From Macrostomum lignano (Eukaryota), in NCBI GenBank assembly GCA_002269645.1, contig NIVC01003602.1, forward strand, positions 1 through 64,000: DNA of 64,000 nucleotides, read 5' to 3'. The notes under the pieces were generated by a model. It did not search any database. It saw only the letters and a list, made by a program, of their open reading frames with translations, and was not told the origin of the DNA. The first letter of the stretch is position 1; each line of letters begins with the position of its first letter. A program made the position numbers and the translations under genes. This document shows positions 6,438 through 48,400 of this stretch, piece by piece.

Positions 6438-6578
6438 TGCAGCTGTCACACAAATCGCACAAGCAGTTGTTGGCTGTTTGTGTACCATTTTTCTGACTGT
6501 ATGAGCTAGTTTTTGAATAGTCTGATTGGCTTTGGCTTGAATTCGCTGCATACAAGCAGTGAGTTAGTAGGCACAAAC

Positions 6579-7265
6579 CTCGTACGAAGAGTGCGTGCCA
6601 TAGTAAAGCGGCACAAACGCCAGCCAGATGATGCAGGTCGTGTACATGGTGAAACCGATGAACTTGGACTCGTTGAAATTCTCCGGAATACGCCGCGTCT
6701 TAATTGCATAGTAAGTGCACACCATTATTAAGACAACATTATAGAGCAGCGACACTAAAAAGGACTTGTCATCGATTCGGCAGCGCAGGATGGCCTCCAG
6801 ACGCTTCGGATGATGAATCCTGGTGCCCGGATTGTTCAGCACCAGCCAGATCAGGGTGCTTACCAGCTGGACGCTGATCAGCGCCCCGCCAATCAGTAGC
6901 TGCGATCTGGGCGAAATAAACGGTGGCCGTTTCGCGCTCCGACTTGCGGCGTCGAAAATCCTAGCGATTCGGTTGGTCTTGGCCAGCAGCGAGGAGTAGA
7001 TTACGGCGAAGCCCAGCCCGATGCCGATTCGCTGCAGGGCGCAGGTGAATCCGCTGGGCTTAGTGATGAGCAGGAATGTCATCAAGTAGCAGATGAGACA
7101 GCCGGAGAGCAGCAGGTAGCTCAGCTCCCTGCCGGAGGCCTTCACTAGTGGAGTCTCATTATACCGGATGAAGGTGGCGATCACGAAGCTGGTGGCTATG
7201 ATGCCGATGGCGCTCAAAATCATGGGCACGATGGCGTACCAGCTGCTCCAGCGCATGTAGTGCAC
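6579..7265 (-). CDS. mGluR: mGluR exon 3: TM1-TM6 of the 7TM domain
   Basis: Motifs TPLVKASGRELSY, KTNRIARIF, IPENFNESKFIGFTMYTTCIIWLAFVP; acceptor CTACAG at 7266 and donor GAG|GTTTGT at 6579. Confidence 0.95.
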
Positions 7266-11952: not shown

Positions 11953-13789
11953 CTGTTGATTGTTTCAGTTTGTTGTTATATTCTTCTTCTGTCTGATCTG
12001 TAGATTCACAAGCTCGAAACTTCCCCAGCTCGAAGCTTCCCAAGCTTAAAACTTCCCCCAGCTAAAAACTTTCTTAAGTATTTTTAAGCTGCATAGACGC
12101 TTGGTGGCGTTCTAACTTTTGTGATTGTGTAAACGTTTAAAACACGCAAAGCTTAGTTATGTACTTCTATTTCAGCAAAAGTCCTTGGCAATGGCATTGA
12201 CAGAATAGCCATGTAGCTAGTAGTATTCTTCTTAGTATAAAACGTGTCTCATACGGACTCAGGGCAATCATGCAAGTACCGCTTGTAATAGCGGATACGA
12301 AAGTTACTTGTACTTGTATTTGAGCCTCGAAAATTATTACACGGAGGTCTTGCCGAACCATTTAATCTTTAATGAGTACTTCAGCTCCACTTTGTAATGA
12401 GTATTTCTATATGATATGCGAATTATCTTTCTATAGCTAGCTACAGTCTAGGAACAAAATTTTCAGGGAATTCAGCAATGGTAATAATCAGAAATAATTT
12501 TCTTTAGCGATTAACAATTGGCTTAACCGTGTTAAAGGTGTTCGTCCGTTAAAGCATAAATTTCCCTTGTATATTCGTTAGCTAAAGAAGAAAATTTTGA
12601 ACGTTAAACTTAAGCGAAGATATAATAAATAAACAATGCGGTAAAGTGAGAACTCTGGAGTCAACAAGTTATTTCATCGGTGGTTTAAATTTTCAACCTC
12701 TAGTGTACATTAGGCTCCCTTCCCTTCCTGCTCGCATGTACATACCCTAGCCCAGCCCGCCTACTGAGGGGTGTGGCTGGCTGGGCTAACCATGCGAAGG
12801 CAGATCATTTTATCGATCGATCTTCTGACCCTTCTGACTGCACATTGGATCTTATCTCGTTCTCATAAGTACATACATGTTGACTTGTAGTGTGACTTGT
12901 CTTATATCTGAGGTCAAGGTCAGATTCCGCATGATCTGCTGGCTCCGTTTTCGCTAAGTTTAATGATTCAAGATCAGTGTGAAGAAAGGTTTTTAAGTAT
13001 CTGACACTCTGATGACCGCTTGCATGCGAGACGATTCAAGCAAGTAAGTGCTAATCCCCGCCATCTCATAACTGGTTTGCGGGCCCAACTAACATTCACT
13101 CAAATCCATAAGAGGAGTAAGAGGAGAACTCAAGAGATCCCATCTTTAGACTAGGCTAATTGAGTAAAAAGGGAAGCAGAGTTCACGCACAGCGGCGGCG
13201 GCAGAGGCAGACTCCTTCATTGCCCAGCGTGAAGTAGTTTTAAGCCACTCAAATCCGTGTTGGAATCCGTTCCAGCCCCTCCATCTCTCTGCTGCACATA
13301 GTTTTTTGCGGCTTGTGCGCTGAGGGCTCTCTTTCCTTTAGGAAGCATCGTTCCCTCTGTAGAGCAATGGAGATCGATGACTGGACTCTAGGGCTATCCT
13401 CCCAGCAGACTGGGCGGAGGGAGCGTGTAGGATGAGAAGGCGGATGAGAGTTCGCCAGTATACACGCCACACGCGGATAAGAATAGATCTCCTGAGCATA
13501 ACACGATTCGCATTTCGTTCCTTCTTTTCTGGTGGCGGGTTTGTGCGGGCAGTTCGCAGTGAAAGCAGCAAGAGGAAATTTCTTCCTGTTGTAAGATTGT
13601 TCCACGGTGAAAAGGAAAGCCGGGACCAGTTGGGCATCACTTGAAATCGATCTAGCTGCTAACCAAGAGGCAGATAGGGAGGGGCTTGTGCAGAGATTTA
13701 CAATAATTGCAATCTTTTGCTTCCCTCCAAGCAGATTTGATTTGCTTCTAGGGAAGAGGATTGGCTAACTCTGCCGAGAGCTTTCACAA

Positions 13790-20665: not shown

Positions 20666-22250
20666 TAGTGTTTTTATTGAATTCTTTCAGCCCTTTATTC
20701 CGCCCACTCTGTCCCTTAATTTGCTGGCATCAGCAGTTTAAAAGTTCATTCATTCAACAAAAAGTATGAAAATTAAGCCTAACCCCTTCCCTGGAGCCTC
20801 TCGCGTTGAAAAACAAGTTTCACAATTTAATCAAGTCGGAACTCACACCCGTCCCCTTACGCTAAACGGAAGTTCAATTTAGTGGATAGAAAGTATTTTC
20901 CCCTTCTCTCAGATACAGGAGCAGTGCAAAAATTTGATTTGTCCCCGGCAAACTCAGTTAGCTCTGACTGTGCACTCACTGCACCGGGCAGTGTCCGTTA
21001 AGATTGAAATTTTTAGTGTCGGATACCCATCGACCGATGCTGCGCTCATTCATCCGGTGGAAGTAAAAACTTTAGTGAGACCTTGCATACATATAAATAT
21101 AAAGCCTTGGGTTGGGTTTAGCTAAGCTTAACTAAACAACGATGCGACGTATTGTGCGCGGCTTCCAACAAAACCTCATCAAGACTATGCGGTTTCAATA
21201 CCAGCTTCACCATAAGCTATTAACTCTTCTTCTCTCTCCATCAGCAAAATCATCAACTGTGTCTGTCTGTGGGCGCTTACTAAGGACATCTTCTATTGCA
21301 TCAAAGCGGCCTGCTCAACCATGGAATACTGCGGGACTCAGGGCCGCACAGTCAACCTTGGCCGGAAGGCAGACTCTCTCCGCTTGGTCCCCTCTCCTCT
21401 CTCTTAGTCTCTTTCTCTCCTCCAAAAAAGCTACTGGATGGGGGAGAATTCAAGGATTCAAGCAAGTGGGGAACGAGAGGAATTTGGACTGGTGAGGGAG
21501 CCACCTTTATTAAGAGGGGGGGGAGGTGAGGGGAGAAGTGTGCGGGTGTGGCTGGGGACCGGAGAAGCGGTATAGAAAAGGCCAGCTGAAGGGGTAAACT
21601 GTAGCTGAAGAGACTACCTGTGTGCGCGTGCGTGTGTGTGTGGGAGTTGTAGGAGGCAGAAAGGTTTTCTCCGCCAGGAGGGAAGGGGGCATGAACCGCC
21701 TCTGCTAGGAATAATTCATTTCTAGGCAAACGTGAGAAGTAGCTGCGAAATTATTAAAACCAAAAATGCAACGGCCACATCACTAGCTGCTGCGTAGGGG
21801 GCATGAAAGTGCGCCAACAGAAGTGCGACCACCATCGCCGCTATTCCATTTGTATCGGTATCGCATCTTTCCTTTCTCTTGTATCGGAGGGCGCGGGGTT
21901 TGACTCCATTTCATTGAGTTGGGGTGTGACACTTCTCCCTTGAGTAGGGGTGGGAAAACTCCGGCACGCTCAAGGTTTGTGTCCTCTCAGCTCTTTTCTT
22001 CCTCTCTCCTCTCATCTCTTCTCTTATCACATCACTCCTCTTATCTCCTCTCTCGCCTCTCTTCTTTCCTCTTTTCTCTGATTCTTGCAATTCTTGCTCA
22101 TGAAATACCAAGCCCAGAGCAAGTGCAAGTTACGAGCTACGAGTAGAAGTACGTGCATACATGATGGGCGTTCGGAAATATCTCTAAAATTGTCACCGAA
22201 TGCATAACACGATAGCAAACTAATCAAAAGAAATTCATGCAGTTTCTCAC

Positions 22251-23765
22251 CAACAAAGAAGTTGCTCTCATTGATGAGAATGTTGTAGAACTCCTTGCCG
22301 GGGAAATTGGTGATGTTTCTAACGCAGGAGATGAACAGGCCAGTGGCTTTCGTGTCTGCGTGCATCGGCTGTTCCTGGCACACCAGCCGCTTCACCTTTT
22401 CGAGACCGTGCGCAAAGGTGTATACAGCGTCGTAGACAAATTGCACTTTCGGTTCCTGCTTAAAATTGGCTATGTGCGACCATTCGCAGACCTTCTGGGT
22501 CGCATTGGCGTCGCTGGAGTTGCCACTACCGCCAGGGGAATTCTGGCACTCCAGTTTCAATTGTCGATACTCGTCGAAGAACGGATTGACGAAAGTTAAG
22601 CCGCTAATGCTTGTTGTTCTGACCGCGTCCTGTCGCAGACTTGTATAGTAGTTATTGAACCCCGGTATCTCGGCCGTGGCAATCTCCAGAGTCAGCGCGC
22701 CCTGAGCCTCGACCGTGTTGTTGGCTACTGGCACGTGACTCTTACCCCAGCCGTCCGCTGAGATCCACACGAAGTGGCTGGTAATATTGGCCCGTCTAAC
22801 CGCGTCAAGAAACTTCTCGGTGTGCTCCTCCCGGGTGAACATGACCACAACGCGAGCTCGCTTCTGGCTGTAGAGTTTCTCCACGATGCCGTCAAGCTCC
22901 TCCTTGCCGGGCTCCAGACTGATGAACAGCCGTTCGGCGATGCAGACGTTCAGCTTTTCAATCTCGGCCTCGAAGCTTTGAATGCCGCCTTCGCCGTAGT
23001 CGCCTTTACTGAATACTGTCGCCACAAAGGTCCAGTTGAAGTAGCCAACAATGTCAGCCAGAGCCTTGGCCTGCTCGGTGTCTGGCGGCAGAGTCCGGGC
23101 AAAATATTCGTAGCGAGCTTTGTCGCTAAGCCAAGCCGAGGTGGACGCGTAGCTAATCTGCGGTATGGCGAATAGCCTCAACAGGTTGGCCACCTGGGCG
23201 CTCACCTGGCTGTAGGCGCCGCCCACTACGCCACGGATTGGTTTCTTGGAATGGCGCCGATACTTAGATCGAATAGCGGGCAGCCGAGTGCCGTTGGGAT
23301 ACTCGCACACGAATCCGCCGTCCAGCTCGTGCGTGAGTGAGTTCTTCACAAATTCTAGAGCCTTCTCGAGTGCCACTGTGTCCTTGGAGCAGGTGTCAAA
23401 CAGTAGAGCGCCCAGCCCGATCTTATGCCGACCGTACTGCAGTATCTCCGGATTTGTGTTAATCTCTTGCAGAGTGAAGATCATCGCCTCCATGCGCTGG
23501 ATGCCCCGGTGGCTGTCCAACCGGCCGCACTTACTGTCCCCGGTCTCCGAGCTGCTGTGGATTGGGAACAGGCCGCCCAGCTGGATGTCCCCGTCGATCA
23601 GCACCTTGTTCTTGTCGTTGGCGGTAGATGAGTCGGCGGCGACGGCGCGGCTGGTGGCGGTACCGATTGAACACGTTGTAGCAGCAAAAGCAGCAGAAAC
23701 AGTTTCAAAAGTTGTTTCGTCAGTAGGTTGGACTCAGTTAGAGCAGAAACTGCTCTTTGTCGCAT
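22251..23765 (-). CDS. mGluR: Metabotropic glutamate receptor, group II-like, exon 1: signal peptide and Venus flytrap domain; one-base frameshift near 23640-23660
   Basis: Motifs IDGDIQLGGLFPIH, RGIQRMEAM, DTCS, GGAYSQVSAQVANLLRLFAIPQISYASTS, GDYGE, ADGWG, EPKVQFV retain the canonical glutamate-contact residues. ATG at 23765 gives MRQRAVSALTESNLLTKQLLKLFLLLLLLQRVQS in an adjacent frame; donor G|GTGAGA at 22251. Confidence 0.95.
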
Positions 23766-35810: not shown

Positions 35811-35874
35811 CTGCGGATGGAGGGGGGTGGGCGGGGGTTGTCTATCTCAAGCACTCGATGTCTGTGGGCAAAAT

Positions 35875-36391
<517 letters not shown>

Positions 36392-36401
36392 ATAAGCTCA
36401 C

Positions 36402-37528
36402 CTTAGGAAACTGCGGGTTCCTCTGCAGGGCGTACACCGGCCCAATGTGTCCGGGATACACAGCGACAATTTTATCGGCGTCAGTTTTGCCTTTCCTGTT
36501 GCAAGCGAAAATCGCGCCCTGCTCCGAGCCGGCCATGAACTTAGTGGGAATTGTCGGCTCGTATTCGAGCGAGTAAGCGCCGTGAGCGCAGGCCAGGTCC
36601 TGCTTCTTTGTCGGATCCAGGCACAGCCGTTCGATCGGTTCGGACAGCTTTCGAGTGTCCCACCAGAGCACTTGACCGTCCGTGGACACTGAGAAGCACT
36701 CTGTACCGGTTTTGCTCTGGTTCCAAATCACTTTCCACACCGGATCGCGATGTCCGTTGGCCACCTCTGTTGACTCAACAGGTTGCGAACCTTTCCTTGA
36801 GTCCCAGTAGGCAATTTGACCGTTGTAGCAACCTCCAACCAGGACGTGCGAGTCCTTGGGATTGTACTCCAGGCAAACAAGTGGCGACACCGGCTTAAGA
36901 GCGAGCTCCGGCTTGTTGGGATTGATGACGTCCCAGAGGTAGGACTCGGTGGACGTGTCCTTCGGCGCCCGCTGGAAATCCGTGTTGCAGTAGGCGATGG
37001 CCAACTTTGTTGGCCCATCCGGGTACCAGCTGATGTGCGCCACGCCGCGGTCTTTGCAAGGATCTCTGAACACGTTGATGGTCTTGGCGGAGGGTGGCTC
37101 TTCCGTTGCTTGAATCTCAATATCGCTGAAGTAGTCCTGGTAGATGTCTATAGCGTTGTTCTGCCTGATGCAGTGCTCCATCTGGTTGCCGAGTTCTGCA
37201 CCGTACTGACGTACATTTCGTCTTTTTCGACCTTCTTACGAAACCGGATCACCTGTTCTACCTCCTGCGGATTGACGTCCTTCGGCCAGCCGCCCTCGGC
37301 GTGATTGACGCCATGGGAGTCAGTCTCAAATCGCTCGGTGTTCACATCGTGCTCGCTCATCTCCTGGACTACTTGGATGGCCCTGTCGACGGGGTCGCGC
37401 TCGAGGAACTCCTTCAGCGCTTCCGGGTTGGGCGCGATGTCTACCAGCAGCTCCGAGGGTCGGTCGCTGAAGATGCATTGGCGACCGAAATCGGCGCGCT
37501 TTTTCGTGTATACGTACTGGATCTCCAT
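36402..37528 (-). CDS. DNAI2: Dynein axonemal intermediate chain 2, exon 1; one-base frameshift at about 37193-37195
   Basis: [22 protein letters not shown]...[11 protein letters not shown]...[10 protein letters not shown] continues in the next frame as [22 protein letters not shown], followed by WD repeats; donor AAG|GTGAGC at 36402. Confidence 0.95.
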
Positions 37529-42219: not shown

Positions 42220-42800
42220 TCAAGTGCAGACATGAGTGAATGCAGAGATGAGTGAATTCAATGCAGGGATAATTGAATTCAATGATGAGTGAATCCAATG
42301 TAGAGATGAGTGAATTCCAAGCATAGATGAATAAATCCAATGCAAATATGAGTGAATCCAATGCAGGGATGAGTGAATCCCATGCATAGATACGTGAATT
42401 CCATGCAAAGATGAGTGAATCCCATGCAGATATGAGTGAATCCCATGCAAAATTGAGTGAATCCCAGCAAAGATGAGTGAATCCCAGAAAATATGTGAAT
42501 CCATGCAAAGATGAGTGAATCCCATGAAAATATGAGTGAATCCATGCAAAGATGAGTGAATCCATGCAGATGAGTGAATCCATGCAGATGAGTGAATCCC
42601 ATGCAAAGATGAGTGAATCCAGCAGATGAGTGAATCCATGCAAAGATGAGTGAATCCCATGAAAATATGAGTGAATCCCATGCAAAGATGAGTGAATCCA
42701 ATGCAGATATGAGTGAATCCCATGCAAAGATGAGTGAATCCCAGGCAAAGATGAGTGAATCCCAGGCAAAGATGAGTGAATTCCATGCAAAGATGAGTGA
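42220..42800. repeat. About 20-22-bp minisatellite (GATGAGTGAATCCCATGCAAA)n
   Basis: Tandem copies with small indels. Confidence 0.92.
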
Positions 42801-43460
42801 ACGCAGAATTAAGTGAATAAAAAACAAGTTTATTACACTTGTCTTAGGCGATAATATTCATGAATTTATCCTGAAATGCTGGATTAATTTTTTATTTTGT
42901 ACAGAAAGAGATGCCATAATGAATAAGAGTAAAATAATGCATTGTTTTGCTTAAAACTGATTAAAGCATTGAAGCAATTCACAGGCAATCACGCGTGAAT
43001 TGTGATTAAAATAGCATGTTTTGACCGGGATATGCCAAATAAAAAGCAGCAATTGAATTTGACTGCAATTATTATCAGACAGAATGCTAATGTACACGAA
43101 TTTTGAGAAGTTCAAAATTTACAACTGACAGACACAGATAACAGCGATAGGGATAGTTTGAGAACAAAGGATTTCACATAAATGCTACAAGTGACGAGAA
43201 ACTATGCTACAAACAGAGATTTAGAAACTGTTTAAATTATTTACATAAATATCGATATTTGTTAATAAGTAGCAACACTTGGAACGAAATTTGACAACAA
43301 CAATTTAATTGAAGCTTGAATGTCAAAGATATTGTACTAATAGAGACTTAAGGGATTAAAGATTTGCCATTTACAAGAAATCGATTGCTATTGAATCCTT
43401 TCTAATCTGTGTACAACATAGCAATTTGCCGTAGGTTCGGTCATCAGGTACAAAAAGCAG

Positions 43461-43745
43461 TCAATTTCTAGCATTACTGTTTGCTTGCAGCAAGGTACGG
43501 CATCGGTTCTGCAGTTTGTTAATCCTCTCAAATACTTTAACAGCTGGGCCCAGTTTCAGGCCGAGACCTGCGAGCACGTCCATTCGCTTCATCAGCATCA
43601 GAGAGGCGCCATCGATCTCTTGATCGACAAATGCCTGAGCAGCCAGAGGGAAGCCTTCGATAGGAGCCAGGATTTCACTTGGGCGATGGTCCACTTGCTG
43701 GCGTCGAATGGATTCGGGTCGTCTAGAAATACAGGCGACTTCCTG
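43461..43745 (-). CDS. SAMD1: SAMD1-like protein last exon: SAM domain; one-base frameshift at about 43655-43659
   Basis: Acceptor CTCCCAACTCCAG at 43746 (phase 2) gives [30 protein letters not shown]; the next frame gives [42 protein letters not shown], close to the SAMD1 SAM ([40 protein letters not shown]). Confidence 0.85.
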
Positions 43746-43829
43746 CTGGAGTTGGGAGAGACAAATCAAGCGAATGAAATTAGCTTTTTACCATAGAAGT
43801 TTGAATTAGAAAACTAGATTTAATGGTCT

Positions 43830-44175
43830 ATCTAGTTGGAAGCTTTTACCATAGACACTGGCTAGTTAAGGTGGTTTTACCGCTACCAGGCATTGGCTAG
43901 CTGGGGTGGAGTTTTACCATAGACACTAGCTGACTAACGTCTAGCTGGGGTGGGATTTTACCATAGACACTGGCTGATTAACGTCTAGCTGGGGTGGGGT
44001 TTTACCATAGACCACTGGCAGACTAACGACTAGTTGGGGTGGAGGTTTACCATAGACACTGGCTAGTTAAGGTGATTTTACCATAGACTGGCTAGTTGGG
44101 TGGAATTTTACCATAGACACTGGCTGACTAACGTCTAGTTGGGGTGGGGTTTTACCATAGACATTGGCTGACAAG
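43830..44175. repeat. Variable 30-42-bp minisatellite (TTTTACCATAGACACTGGCT..CTAGCTGGGGTGG)n
   Basis: Tandem copies filling the SAMD1-like intron. Confidence 0.88.
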
Positions 44176-44250
44176 TCAGAGTCTTTGCAATATAGACTGT
44201 TGCATAAATTTAGATTTAGGCCCACGGTTTCTACCAAGCGCGTCACTCAC

Positions 44251-45912
44251 CTATTCACCGATCCGTCATCCTCGATCTTCTGACAGGCTGAGCAAATCCA
44301 CTTGGCCTCGCTAGCCGGCTTCTCCGGTATCTTCGGCCGGTGGCAGCTGACGTGGTAGCCCTTGTCGCAGGCGTCACAGATAAGCATCAGCTCCGCGTCG
44401 CCTGGATCGAGGCAGACGCAGCAGGTCTTGCACTCGGAGCACTGCCAAGGCGACTGGCGGGCTCGAGAGGCCAGCTCAACTGAGTAGAGCATGCAGCTAG
44501 GATGGGCCCGGTGGCTGCAGTCGCGGCAGGTTAGCAACTGCTCAGGGACGCCCATTCGATTAGCTCGGCCAGAGGACAAGCAAAAATCGCAGAGTTCATC
44601 GTCAGACTGCTGCTGATTAAGCTCTTGCTCAATCTCCTGCTCAGAGTCTTCCTGATGTTGCTGCTGCTGCTGCTGGGAACGCTCTTCCAGAGAAGCAGCA
44701 GATGCTTTGGATTGTTTTCGAGTTTTCTCTTTGTTGTGCTTTGACTTGGTCGTAGCCGGCGATTCACTTGGTTGACTTTGGCGTCGCTCCTTCTGCTCGG
44801 TTGGATTTGGCGATCCGGCGGTCGCCGGCTTCTCAGCGACTACGGCGGAAGCGGCGGCTACTGCTGGGGATGCTGAGTCCCTGGCAACGCCTTTGACTCG
44901 CGAGATGACCACGGTTGGAATTGGTGGTAGGGCCTGCTGCGGTTGCTTAGTGACAGACGAAGGCTGCGATGTCGGAGAGTGCTCAGCAGACTGAGCCGCT
45001 GGCGTGGCCGTAGTGTCTGCCACAGAGACAGACGTGATGCAGTAAGCAGGTGGCGCAGTTTCACTATTAGAGGAGCAATTACTTGAGCTGGAACTCGCGG
45101 TGGAGGCTGGCTGCCGCTGCTGCTGCTGAGGCAAGCAATGGCCAACTGACAAGTCCAGCGGTTCGCACAGGTCCGACTGAGCTGGCTCGCTTGGTCTCGG
45201 CCGCTTAGCCTGGGGCGGGTGAAGCTGCTGCGACTGCTGCTGCTTGTTGCTGTTGCTTGTCTGCTGCTGCTTGTTGTTGCTGCTGCTGCTGCTGCTCTCC
45301 TTGCGCTTTTTGAGCGCCTCCTTATCGCGACGCTTCGATCCGTCCGGGTCGAGAGTGTACCGGCCGGTGGAGACGCGGCACAGTCCGCCAGTGGACGCCT
45401 CGCGTTCGAGCGCCATCTCCAGAGTTTCGCCCTGCAGAGGCTCCGCGCCTGGCGCCGAATCCTCTTCTTCAGACGTCGCCGACGGCAGGCAGCGCAGACG
45501 ATCGGCCACGTCCTGAACGGTGAAGCCGGAGGCGAGCACGTCGGGCTGATCGCTGGCCAGGCTGCCGACTGCGGCCAACAGGCGACGACTGGTGGCGCTG
45601 CTGTTCAACACGCTGCTGATGAGGGAGCCGCGGCGCCATTTTGAAGCATTCCGGTAGGACACGGAGCCTTTGTACTCGACCTTCAGCACCGAGCCGTCGT
45701 CAACTAGACGCTCGAGCAGCTGTACAATGGCCTCCCGTTGGAGACCGTGATGCCGCGTCACCATCGAACAGATCCGATCAATATCTGGCCGGGCCTTCCG
45801 CTCGCGCAGTTTGTCAATGATGGTCAGGATCATTGTGCGGATCGGCTCATCGCCGAGAGCAGCCGCTGCAGCCGCGGCGGCTGCTGCTGCTGCGGCGGCT
45901 TTTTCCGCGGAA

Positions 45913-45948
<36 letters not shown>

Positions 45949-46262
45949 GACGGTGGCGGAGAAGACATCGTTGTGGACGTGACAATGGCGGCTGCGTGTC
46001 CGGGCAGCTGCTGAGCGGCGGCCAGATTGTCCGGACGCTGTTGAACTAGCCGATCAACCGAGTGTCCGATGGAGGACTTGACCGGTGCCGGTGCATGACA
46101 GATGTTGTTGTTCTCGCCTAGGCTGGCACTGGTATTATTATTAATGGCAGCCTTTGCACCGCCGTGGTGATGATGGAGCTGATGGTGATAGCTAGCCACC
46201 ACCTGCTGCGACGACAGGAAGCCAGGCGGGATGGCCGTCTGCACTGGCAGAGCGCGGGCCAT
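44251..46262 (-). CDS. SAMD1: SAMD1-like chromatin protein main exon: SAMD1-type winged helix, second H15-like winged helix, low-complexity linker and double PHD finger
   Basis: ATG at 46262. IIDKLRERKARPDIDRICSMV.RHHG...VLKVEYKGSVSYRNA resembles SAMD1 WH. LLAAVGSL..GFTVQDVADRL..LEMALERE..G.L..GRYTL resembles KAT6 WH2. The DPF runs from CDFC through HPSC, WQCSECKTCCVC and CDACDKGYHVSC to WICSAC. Donor AG|GTGAGT at 44251. Confidence 0.88.
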
Positions 46263-46399
46263 TTGTTCTTTCCGTCTTTTTGAGAACTTTCTTTTAGGAA
46301 GCAAATTGGCTGGTATACACAACCAGACGGGCAAAAGGGAAGCAAGCTTCTTGGTGGGAGATATTTGCGACGCGCAACGCAGTCTGGGTACCGCTGCTG

Positions 46400-48400
46400 A
46401 GGAGAGCGACAACTTAAAAGCGCGACTGAGTGGGGGGGGTGGAGGAGAGAGAGGAAGGCAGGGCCTCCGGGAAGCAAACAGGGCTTTGTGCGAGAGGAGG
46501 AAAAAAGAGAAAAAAGCCCGACGGAATTGAGGGGGCAGACAGGGCCTTTTTTCTAGTTAAGGCAGGCAGGCAAGGCTTTATTCCGCGGATCGCGGGCGGG
46601 CGCGCTAAACTCGGGCCGGGCCGTCCGTCTTCTCTTCTTTCTGCTTGGTGGCGGGCCGCGTCGGTGCCTCCCTGCGCATAAATAGGGGCCCACCGCCACC
46701 CCCCACAGCCCCAAGCCTAAGAGAATGAGGGGTCGGAACTGGAAGCGAAGAACTGGGGGGGGGGGGGGGCGGGTGACGCGCTCACTCGGTCCAGATCGCC
46801 CCCGCCGCTCTCCAGTCCGGCCGCCAACCCCGCCTCCCCAAACCAAAGCGGCCTCAGCCAGTGAAACGAGAGGAGAGCCCGCCGCCGCGCCGGGCCGCTC
46901 TCCAGAGCCTGTTTCGCGGGCCTTTGCCACCTTCCCACTCACCCCCCCCCCACACGCAGCAGACTAAGGCCAAGGCCCGGTCCGCTTTTGCCCGGCGGCG
47001 GCGGAGGAGTGGGGCAGGGGTTGGGCCGCGGGTTTATGGCCCTGGGGCGCGCTGGGCCGTGCCGCTGACGCGGTCTTGGCTTCTATGCTTCGCTTCGCCT
47101 CCTCTCCTAGTTCTCCCGCGCTCCTGGGGCCGTGGAGCCGCCCCGCCGCCTGCAGCCCCTCAAGGCCAAAGCCGAAAAAAACTGGAAGAGAGCGCAGCGC
47201 GCTCAGCGTCACCGCCAGCCAGAGCCAGACAGAATGCTCCGGAAGAGAGCTCTCTTTCAAATCCCGCCCCAATGCGAAATAAGTCAAACAGGGATGGTGC
47301 GGCCTTGAAGACAAAATAGACTTCTGATGATTGCCTAAAAATTAATAAGCTCCCCAGATTTCCTACTGATAAAAGTGGCACAGACAGACGAGTCATTGAC
47401 AGGCTGAAATCCCCGGGATTTTTCCGGGGATCGAATTCTTAAACTGGACTCTACACAAGACGCCGCTTACTCTACAGCTCTCGCGGCACCACCCCTGCAA
47501 CCGAAAGAAGGACCTCCGTCGATGCTCGATGCAGCCGGTCAGTCATCCACCCGAAACCCCTCTGTCTCTCTCACTCACTGCGCCAGACACTCGTTCGTCC
47601 TAATGAATTCTCCACTGCGCCGGCTCCTATCCTCGTGCGTCAGCCCCCGCCTTGCCCGCGTTGCCTGTCTCTCGGTTGCCCTTGCCTGCCCGCCTCTCCC
47701 ACCTCTTCTTTGCTCTTTCTCTTCAGTGTCGCGGCTGCTGCGGCCGCTGGCCTCGCCTGCCTAGACGCGCGCTCAACCCGGTTCTTCCTTCCTCTTCCTC
47801 TCTCTTTCTCTTTCTCTCAGCCGGCAGGCGGCCCAGCCATCGAGGGGGGGGGGGAGTTGAGCTAAGTAGCCCGAGAGCCTATATAGGTATAAGGTGGATA
47901 GGCGGGCCGTCCCCCGCCCCACCTTTTTCTCTCTTTTTTCTTGCCAGCCATGAGCCTCAAATCCGCCGATGCGAGTCGCCGCAAGGCCGCCCCCCCCCCT
48001 GGGGTCTATTCATCTTTTCCCCTATATATCTATCTATATTGCTCATCCCTTATACCTGTATAGATTCCTCATTTTTTTCCACATCCTGCCAGCAGGAGCA
48101 GAATCTGAGCTGAGCCGAGCCTATAGCTATAGCTAGTCCCTAGTCCGCGCCACTTCCCCGTTTCCTCACCCCTCTCTATCCTCCCCCCTCCCCCTCGTCG
48201 ATTCTTGATCCCCATTTTCCCAACCGCGAGCGCGCGGGTGCGAACGGAGCGCTCACGGGGATCAAGAGGCGAGGCGGGAAATCGTTCCTATAGAAAAGTT
48301 GCAAATCTCTCATCCTAGTCCTCTACCTGCCGCCTTCCACCCACCTAATCATTCGAACAATCTGCATCCTGTTCTGTTTCTGCTCCGTTTATAAGGAATT
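46400..48400. promoter_or_regulatory. GC/CpG-rich region upstream of the SAMD1-like gene (probable 5'UTR/promoter)
   Basis: CpG-dense with G/C tracts, directly 5' of the ATG on the minus strand. Confidence 0.45.

Follow-up and report, generated by a model that had tools for sequence, protein, structure and literature searches.

We analysed a 64,000-nt stretch of Macrostomum lignano DNA (contig NIVC01003602.1, positions 1 to 64,000 of the forward strand; hereafter the window), in which a two-exon gene occupies positions 46262-43461 of the minus strand (Table 1; unless stated otherwise, positions are those of the window). The gene is a member of a conserved metazoan protein family that combines two winged helices (WH1 and WH2), a double PHD finger (DPF) and a SAM domain, in this order, and has no catalytic domain. 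Exon 1 encodes a low-complexity N-terminus, WH1, WH2, a long Q/S/A-rich linker and the DPF, and its WH and DPF blocks are covered by homologue matches in tblastn searches. It ends at the donor site AATAG/gtgagt (44251/44250); on the acceptor side, there is a possible NAGNAG site at 43742. The intron is AT-richer and shows a low CpG observed/expected (o/e) ratio of 0.38; tandem repeats of 44 nt (also 89 nt) and 29-30 nt, detected with TRF, fill most of it (43897-44125). Read across the GT-AG junction, the frame leads directly into the conserved motif DASKW... that opens the SAM domain, and in an annotated M. lignano homologue the DPF and SAM exons are likewise separated by a phase-2 intron, at an almost identical position. 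An earlier interpretation of the same letters, made without database searches (the sequence-only reading), had proposed the same start codon, stop codon and 44251/43745 junction, all of which agree with the sequence and its translation.

Table 1. Positions of the WH1-WH2-DPF-SAM gene and its encoded domains in the window.
Feature	Position	Strand	Description	Basis
Coding exon 1	44251..46262	-	ATG at 46262; 670 codons + 2 nt	Open frame, translation
WH1, SAMD1-type winged helix	45639..45848	-	aa ~139-208	Pfam PF21524, phmmer, AlphaFold2
WH2, second winged helix	45348..45611	-	aa ~218-305	AlphaFold2, family hidden Markov model, Foldseek
Double PHD finger (DPF)	44277..44597	-	aa 556-662	phmmer, Pfam PHD x2
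Intron	43746..44250	-	505 nt, GT...AG, phase 2; acceptor ctccag/CAGG	
Coding exon 2	43461..43745	-	Linker, SAM domain, stop codon 43463-43461	Two-frame translation, tblastn
SAM domain, SAMD1-like	43515..43696	-	Split over two reading frames in the assembly	
Frameshift site	43659..43663	-	CTATC, 5 nt instead of two codons, between Leu (CTC) and Glu (GAA)	

The first structured domain of the encoded protein is a winged helix of the SAMD1 type. It matches the Pfam family SAMD1_WH (PF21524) between aa 144 and 205 with E = 2.1e-27, and in phmmer human SAMD1 (6lui; E = 1.5e-17, 56% identity) is a better match than KAT6A (7y43; E = 1.6e-11, 42% identity). WH1 carries the RK-ARPD and YKGSVSYRN elements. 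Its AlphaFold2 (AF2) model superimposes on 6lui with a template-modelling (TM) score of 0.90 and a root-mean-square deviation of 0.8 Å, KAT6A and ZMYND11 ranking lower in the Foldseek comparison, and the model comprising both WH1 and WH2 has a mean predicted local distance difference test (pLDDT) score of 86.7. Nine residues that contact DNA are given for SAMD1 in the paper describing its structure with DNA (PMC8115922). Alignment with this set revealed that eight of the nine are kept in the window protein (R43, R45, K46, R48, Y87, K88, S92 and R94), among them the CpG-contacting pairs R45/K46 and Y87/K88.

The region following WH1 is predicted by AF2 to fold into three helices and a β-hairpin (H-H-H-E-E), both in the two-domain model and when WH2 is modelled separately, with an acidic disordered insert separating helices 2 and 3. 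In the two-domain model, block-mean pLDDT values are approximately 90-97, with lower values for the insert. A WH2 hidden Markov model (HMM) of the family, made from 83 non-flatworm members with SAMD1 and KAT6 sequences left out, scored 31.1 bits on the window protein (aa 218-304), the best of 200 shuffled sequences reaching 6.8 bits; the same HMM gave 22.5 bits with fish SAMD1 and 9.8 bits with Aedes KAT6. In alignments, WH2 coincides with the Pfam Linker_histone region of other family members and of Aedes KAT6. Linker_histone also matches the WH2 region of the amphioxus and hemichordate members, and the Pfam family SAMD1_SHD (PF24971; SHD, small helical domain) matches the corresponding region in these members and in fish SAMD1, with E = 2.5e-21 in fish SAMD1 and 26.3 bits, for a cut-off of 27, in an amphioxus member.

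All 16 Cys/His zinc ligands are present in the DPF (16/16), and the Asp pair with which MOZ anchors H3R2 (D282/D285) is aligned in it. The best PDB match of this region in phmmer is KAT6A (E = 1.5e-26), followed by KAT6B, DPF3, DPF2 and PHF10, and the DPF is likely to bind the H3 tail. At the C-terminus, the SAM domain, once repaired by 1 nt as described below, finds SAMD1/Atherin (6luk) as its best PDB match, with a gapless phmmer alignment of 61 aa (E = 1.2e-15); Pfam SAM matches in the window protein lie under the gathering thresholds. The sequence-only reading had described an N-terminal winged helix nearest to SAMD1 with RK-ARPD and YKGSxSYRN elements, a second, H15-like winged helix, a tandem PHD in the order of the KAT6A/B N-terminus and a SAMD1-like SAM domain, and each of these assignments was borne out by the comparisons above.

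The SAM exon contains a frameshift. Homologue high-scoring segment pairs in tblastn halt at 43664 and restart at 43658 in a different frame, as three-frame translation also shows, and the literal product of the assembly stops after 719 aa, inside the SAM domain. One added base restores a gapless 61-residue alignment with the SAM domain of human SAMD1 and gives a protein of 765 aa. The sequence-only reading had given this length for a corrected protein, silent about the frameshift behind the correction; the figure holds for the repaired frame and not for the assembly as it stands. A programmed frameshift or a micro-intron at this site was ruled out, since just 1 nt is absent from a collinear, gapless alignment. 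In the 58 codons beyond the shift, comparison with the M. lignano homologue showed 4, 5 and 29 differences at codon positions 1, 2 and 3, respectively, corresponding to 25 synonymous and 8 non-synonymous codon changes with no additional lesions, and the short part of the SAM domain preceding the shift is likewise conserved. Both halves of the domain have thus been under coding constraint in different frames, and the 1-nt shift most likely stems from an error in sequencing or assembly, or else arose very recently as a lesion. The homologous gene on contig L002 (ENA ERZ25070786 ctg119913l) has an independent 1-nt shift in its SAM region (13590-13610 of that contig), located in a GGGGG run directly past the motif DATGW, and the corresponding database protein (P0003) reads on in the wrong frame. 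This second shift resembles a homopolymer sequencing error, which suggests that such errors happen in this type of data.

Were the deletion real, the locus would be a pseudogene or would encode a truncated 719-aa WH1-WH2-DPF protein devoid of a functional SAM domain. The frameshift does stand in the sole sequence at hand, and M. lignano has at least two paralogues (P0001 and P0008), whose redundancy could allow one copy to decay. However, the 2-kb exon 1 is open throughout, the codons past the shift vary mainly at third positions and contain no further lesions, and the L002 gene displays a 1-nt shift of its own that looks like a sequencing error. We therefore regard a pseudogene or a truncated product as unlikely.

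To define the distribution of the architecture, homologues were searched with a linker-free query, as low-complexity words dominated a search with the whole 765-aa protein, which yielded 7 matches. The search retrieved 112 homologues, nearly all of which contain a WH, two PHDs and a SAM domain in the same order and are typically 400-650 aa long. The WH-DPF-SAM architecture is shared by about 100 protein clusters from protostomes and invertebrate deuterostomes, including flatworms, molluscs, an annelid, nemerteans, a brachiopod, chelicerates, a myriapod, echinoderms, hemichordates and amphioxus and, among the insects, fireflies, Lepidoptera and a planthopper. The closest relatives of the window protein are two M. 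lignano proteins, with 69-70% identity in the conserved blocks. Entries from tunicates (Clavelina and Ciona savignyi; P0096 and P0105) and from a sea anemone (Exaiptasia isoform X2; P0101) have the DPF and the SAM domain without winged helices, which may reflect domain loss, or truncation of an isoform or a gene model.

Unnamed invertebrate proteins such as M. lignano BOX15_Mlig008857g1, Branchiostoma belcheri 'KAT6B-like' and the 'atherin' of Aplysia and Biomphalaria have the identical domain order and share conserved motifs with the window protein over their whole extent. The latter differs from these relatives in its greater length after repair, which is due to an N-terminal extension of ~135 aa, the acidic insert in WH2 and a low-complexity linker of ~250 aa. 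The genes also differ in their introns, of which there is one in the window gene, four in the M. lignano homologue and none in L002, so that intron number differs widely among related flatworm-like genomes. The M. lignano homologue (NIVC01003246.1, 10001-19560) consists of five coding exons, and one of its introns splits the DPF.

The architecture is therefore ancient and widespread, and it is present in the databases under misleading labels. NCBI and UniProt hold these proteins with precomputed Pfam architectures, and the novelty that the sequence-only reading had considered for the domain combination does not stand. The names assigned to family members include 'histone acetyltransferase KAT6A/B-like', 'atherin', 'ubi-d4-like', 'KMT2C/D-like' and 'hypothetical'. 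Dozens of RefSeq/UniProt entries of the family (among P0010-P0107) are named for an acetyltransferase or methyltransferase domain that they do not have. The KAT6/KMT2-type labels are a systematic annotation error; 'KAT6B-like histone acetyltransferase' is wrong because these proteins lack an acetyltransferase domain. A description of a WH-DPF-SAM family was not found in the literature, whose coverage here was incomplete, so that the negative amounts to absence of evidence and no more; one apparent mention concerned SAMD11 and not SAMD1. The family is listed in databases yet undescribed.

The order WH1-WH2-DPF is also that of the NEMM-DPF region of KAT6, which raises the question of whether the gene is a KAT6/Enok gene with overlooked MYST exons, or a KAT6 N-terminal duplicate, restricted to one lineage, that gained a SAM exon. 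The best DPF match to KAT6A is in line with this explanation, as are the many homologues named 'KAT6B-like' by database pipelines. Nevertheless, when two KAT6 proteins, one with a partial MYST region (P0006) and one with a full one (P0007), were used as tblastn queries over the whole 64-kb window, they matched the WH and DPF regions only and no MYST match was detected. The window protein likewise had no Pfam MOZ_SAS or zf-MYST match, and translation ends past the SAM domain at a stop codon whose position is common to all homologues. In addition, WH1 is much nearer to SAMD1 than to KAT6A, and the WH-DPF-SAM combination spans many phyla and is hence not specific to one lineage. A KAT6 origin of either kind is thus very improbable, and the WH1-WH2-DPF-SAM order without a MYST domain, as originally proposed for this locus, was confirmed.

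A further explanation would be that the proposed intron mistakenly links two neighbouring genes, one encoding the WH and DPF domains and a small one encoding the SAM domain. The junction is predicted from the DNA sequence, the intron is rich in repeats and the frame of the SAM exon is disrupted. Against such a misjoining, the frame of the junction enters the conserved start of the SAM domain directly, more than 80 independently annotated homologues have WH, DPF and SAM in a single protein, L002 contains the three in one intronless stretch, and the M. lignano homologue has an intron of the same phase at this place. Two separate genes are, accordingly, scarcely credible, and even less so than a KAT6 gene.

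The relationship of the WH1-WH2-DPF-SAM family to SAMD1 and KAT6 was assessed by comparing family profiles with the PDB. The WH1 block scored 125.7 bits with SAMD1 and 72.4 bits with KAT6A, and the SAM block 116 bits with SAMD1 and 65 bits with PHC3; in both blocks, SAMD1 lies far above any other solved protein. For the DPF, whose affinity was judged by these profile scores, the values were 141.6-146.8 bits with KAT6A, 132.9 with KAT6B, 127-131 with DPF2/DPF3 and 119-120 with PHF10. No PHD occurs in any of 113 vertebrate SAMD1 clusters, which range from shark to birds and include a monotreme, and several of them contain SAMD1_SHD; the fish SAMD1 fragment used as query returned vertebrate SAMD1 only and gives no ranking of invertebrate members against KAT6. 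In a neighbour-joining tree of WH1 plus WH2, the family and vertebrate SAMD1 together exclude KAT6 in 100/100 bootstraps, and the family without SAMD1 is monophyletic in 14/100. The tree is rough and its internal branching unreliable, SAMD1 joining, for instance, the long flatworm branches.

In these searches, vertebrates yielded SAMD1 and no WH-DPF-SAM protein, and WH-DPF-SAM proteins are found in invertebrate deuterostomes. This complementary distribution, together with the domain scores, speaks for orthology, the DPF having been lost on the vertebrate stem, and for a more ancient WH1-WH2-DPF origin in common with KAT6. The family thus most likely represents the pre-vertebrate orthologue of SAMD1 (atherin), and its WH1-WH2-DPF module appears to be paralogous to the N-terminus of KAT6/Enok, the resemblance being one of common descent. 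The sequence-only reading had left a choice between an ancestral form linking SAMD1 and KAT6 and a lineage-specific fusion. The former is supported; the latter is ruled out by the occurrence of the same architecture in protostomes and invertebrate deuterostomes. Its description of vertebrate SAMD1 as a protein of WH and SAM domains alone is outdated, as PF24971 (SAMD1_SHD) marks a third domain in SAMD1, which aligns with WH2. For the same reason the term 'hybrid' describes the mixed SAMD1/KAT6 affinities correctly and is otherwise misleading: SAMD1 keeps WH2 as its SHD, and the retained DPF is the sole real difference.

Compared with SAMD1, the window protein has a winged helix of the same CpG-binding type and a similar SAM domain, WH2 appears to correspond to the SHD of SAMD1, and both proteins are non-catalytic, whereas SAMD1 lacks PHD fingers and the window protein has the DPF between WH2 and SAM. 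The window protein is therefore classed as a candidate SAMD1 orthologue whose architecture departs from that of canonical SAMD1. Mammalian SAMD1 contains a Pro/Ala-rich disordered region between WH and SHD, while the window protein has long Q/S/A-rich linkers. With KAT6A/KAT6B (MOZ/MORF) and the NEMM-DPF region of Enok it has in common the WH1-WH2-DPF order, the best PDB match of the DPF and the top Foldseek match of WH2, which is to MORF. It differs from them in lacking both the MYST domain and a Ser/Met-rich C-terminus, in ending with a SAM domain, in its more SAMD1-like WH1 and in several residues of the MOZ K14ac pocket. The BAF45/d4 proteins (DPF1-3) and PHF10 have the same face-to-back tandem PHD, and DPF3b has an Asp (D263) at the position of MOZ S210, as the window protein does; unlike them, however, the window protein has no Requiem/C2H2 or SAY domains, and their profile scores are lower (127-131 and 119-120, against 142-147).

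Taken together, these results are best explained by a two-exon gene encoding an orthologue of SAMD1 with WH1-WH2-DPF-SAM architecture, which would act as a scaffold without catalysis through a mechanism that we infer from its domains; we assign this explanation a probability of roughly three in four. Several observations weigh against it. The splice junction and the start codon are predictions from the DNA. The SAM sequence is present and conserved, but its frame is interrupted as assembled, so that the locus might be a pseudogene or its product might lack SAM. In WH1, the SAMD1 DNA contact R56 is a Ser. In WH2, the segment from the window protein gave no Pfam match even at E <= 10. Foldseek searches with the two-domain model were dominated by WH1 matches, and the WH2-only model was used instead; its top PDB match was WH2 of MORF (8e4v, a nuclear magnetic resonance structure; PMC9908889), with a probability of 0.98 but without significance (best E = 0.069), and linker histone H1 appeared further down. 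As for the DPF, the lead of KAT6A over the BAF45 DPFs in the profile scores is just ~13 bits. Its K14ac pocket is altered as well. The pocket of MOZ is formed by S210, F211, N235, L242, W257, C259 and I260 (PMC3902925), of which F211, W257 and C259 are kept in the alignment and four are changed: S210D (as in DPF3b), N235H, L242M and I260S. These changes from MOZ make acyl-lysine reading by the DPF uncertain. Finally, the tree gives SAMD1 no firm place within the family, and its proposed orthology rests on the domain scores and the complementary phyletic distribution.

The domains suggest how a protein of this kind may act, CpG-DNA binding, reading of the H3 tail or of its acylation, and SAM oligomerisation being activities that we infer from sequence relationships. 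For the activities of SAMD1 itself (binding to unmethylated CpG, SAM polymerisation and interaction with L3MBTL3), the comparison covered the conservation of residues. WH1 would place the R-K residues that end helix 1 in the major groove of a CpG site, and its YK wing in the minor groove, in the manner of SAMD1. WH2 would add non-specific DNA or nucleosome contacts like those of linker histones, as shown for the WH2 of MORF. The DPF would dock on the N-terminus of unmodified H3 and may recognise acylated H3K14, and the SAM domain would self-associate or pair with the SAM domains of the L(3)mbt/Polycomb group. The outcome would be a non-enzymatic scaffold, probably repressive, concentrated at CpG-rich chromatin. 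The CpG o/e ratio across the window is 0.82, and the genome probably has little CpG methylation. Discrimination between methylated and unmethylated CpG may consequently be irrelevant here, a further point against the explanation given above; with little methylation, WH1 would read CpG density and not methylation.

The surroundings of the gene in the window were also inspected. Approximately 660 nt downstream of the stop codon, a 21-nt tandem repeat (consensus ATGCAAAGATGAGTGAATCC) extends over 42240-42801 in ~28 copies and yields spurious long open reading frames (ORFs) in several frames on both strands. The upstream region (46263-47500) has a G+C content of 61%, a run of ~15 C near 46755-46770, CT-rich tracts and a CpG o/e ratio of 0.83, near the window average. 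Farther away on the minus strand, an ORF at 22027-23604 contains an ANF_receptor ligand-binding domain (Pfam, E = 3.8e-64), and another at 6564-7265 contains the 7tm_3 domain of class C G-protein-coupled receptors (Pfam, E = 1.2e-70). The two ORFs probably belong, as exons, to a single metabotropic-glutamate-like receptor gene of more than 15 kb. A 444-aa ORF at 35847-37181, also on the minus strand, has weak β-propeller/WD40 matches (THOC3, Prp19-like) far under the Pfam cut-offs.

The window gene itself is one more, possibly damaged, member of the WH1-WH2-DPF-SAM family, and the main interest of the finding lies at the family level. SAMD1 has been termed 'a vertebrate-specific protein' with an unstructured centre between its WH and SAM domains (PMC8115922), the papers on the KAT6A and MORF winged helices compare vertebrate SAMD1, KAT6A/B, Enok and ZMYND11 only, and a review of DPF proteins lists only six in mammals, which go back to two ancestral genes of invertebrates (PMC8538644). 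The family described here contradicts both the vertebrate specificity of SAMD1 and the count of two ancestral DPF genes. We consider it probable, with somewhat less confidence than for the gene itself, that SAMD1 is not vertebrate-specific, that an ancestral bilaterian WH1-WH2-DPF-SAM protein coupled CpG, H3-tail and SAM functions, and that vertebrates, at their origin, lost the DPF and replaced it with a disordered region. Under this ancestral reading, the family would be a further lineage of non-catalytic DPF histone readers, of which the window gene is one surviving example. The family also provides a concrete model for the origin of a CpG-island repressor, in which a KAT6-like N-terminus joined to a SAM domain lost its histone-reading module. 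Moreover, it brings in invertebrates that are amenable to RNA interference and whose genomes show little CpG depletion, in which the joint reading of DNA and histones by a protein of the SAMD1 type can be studied.

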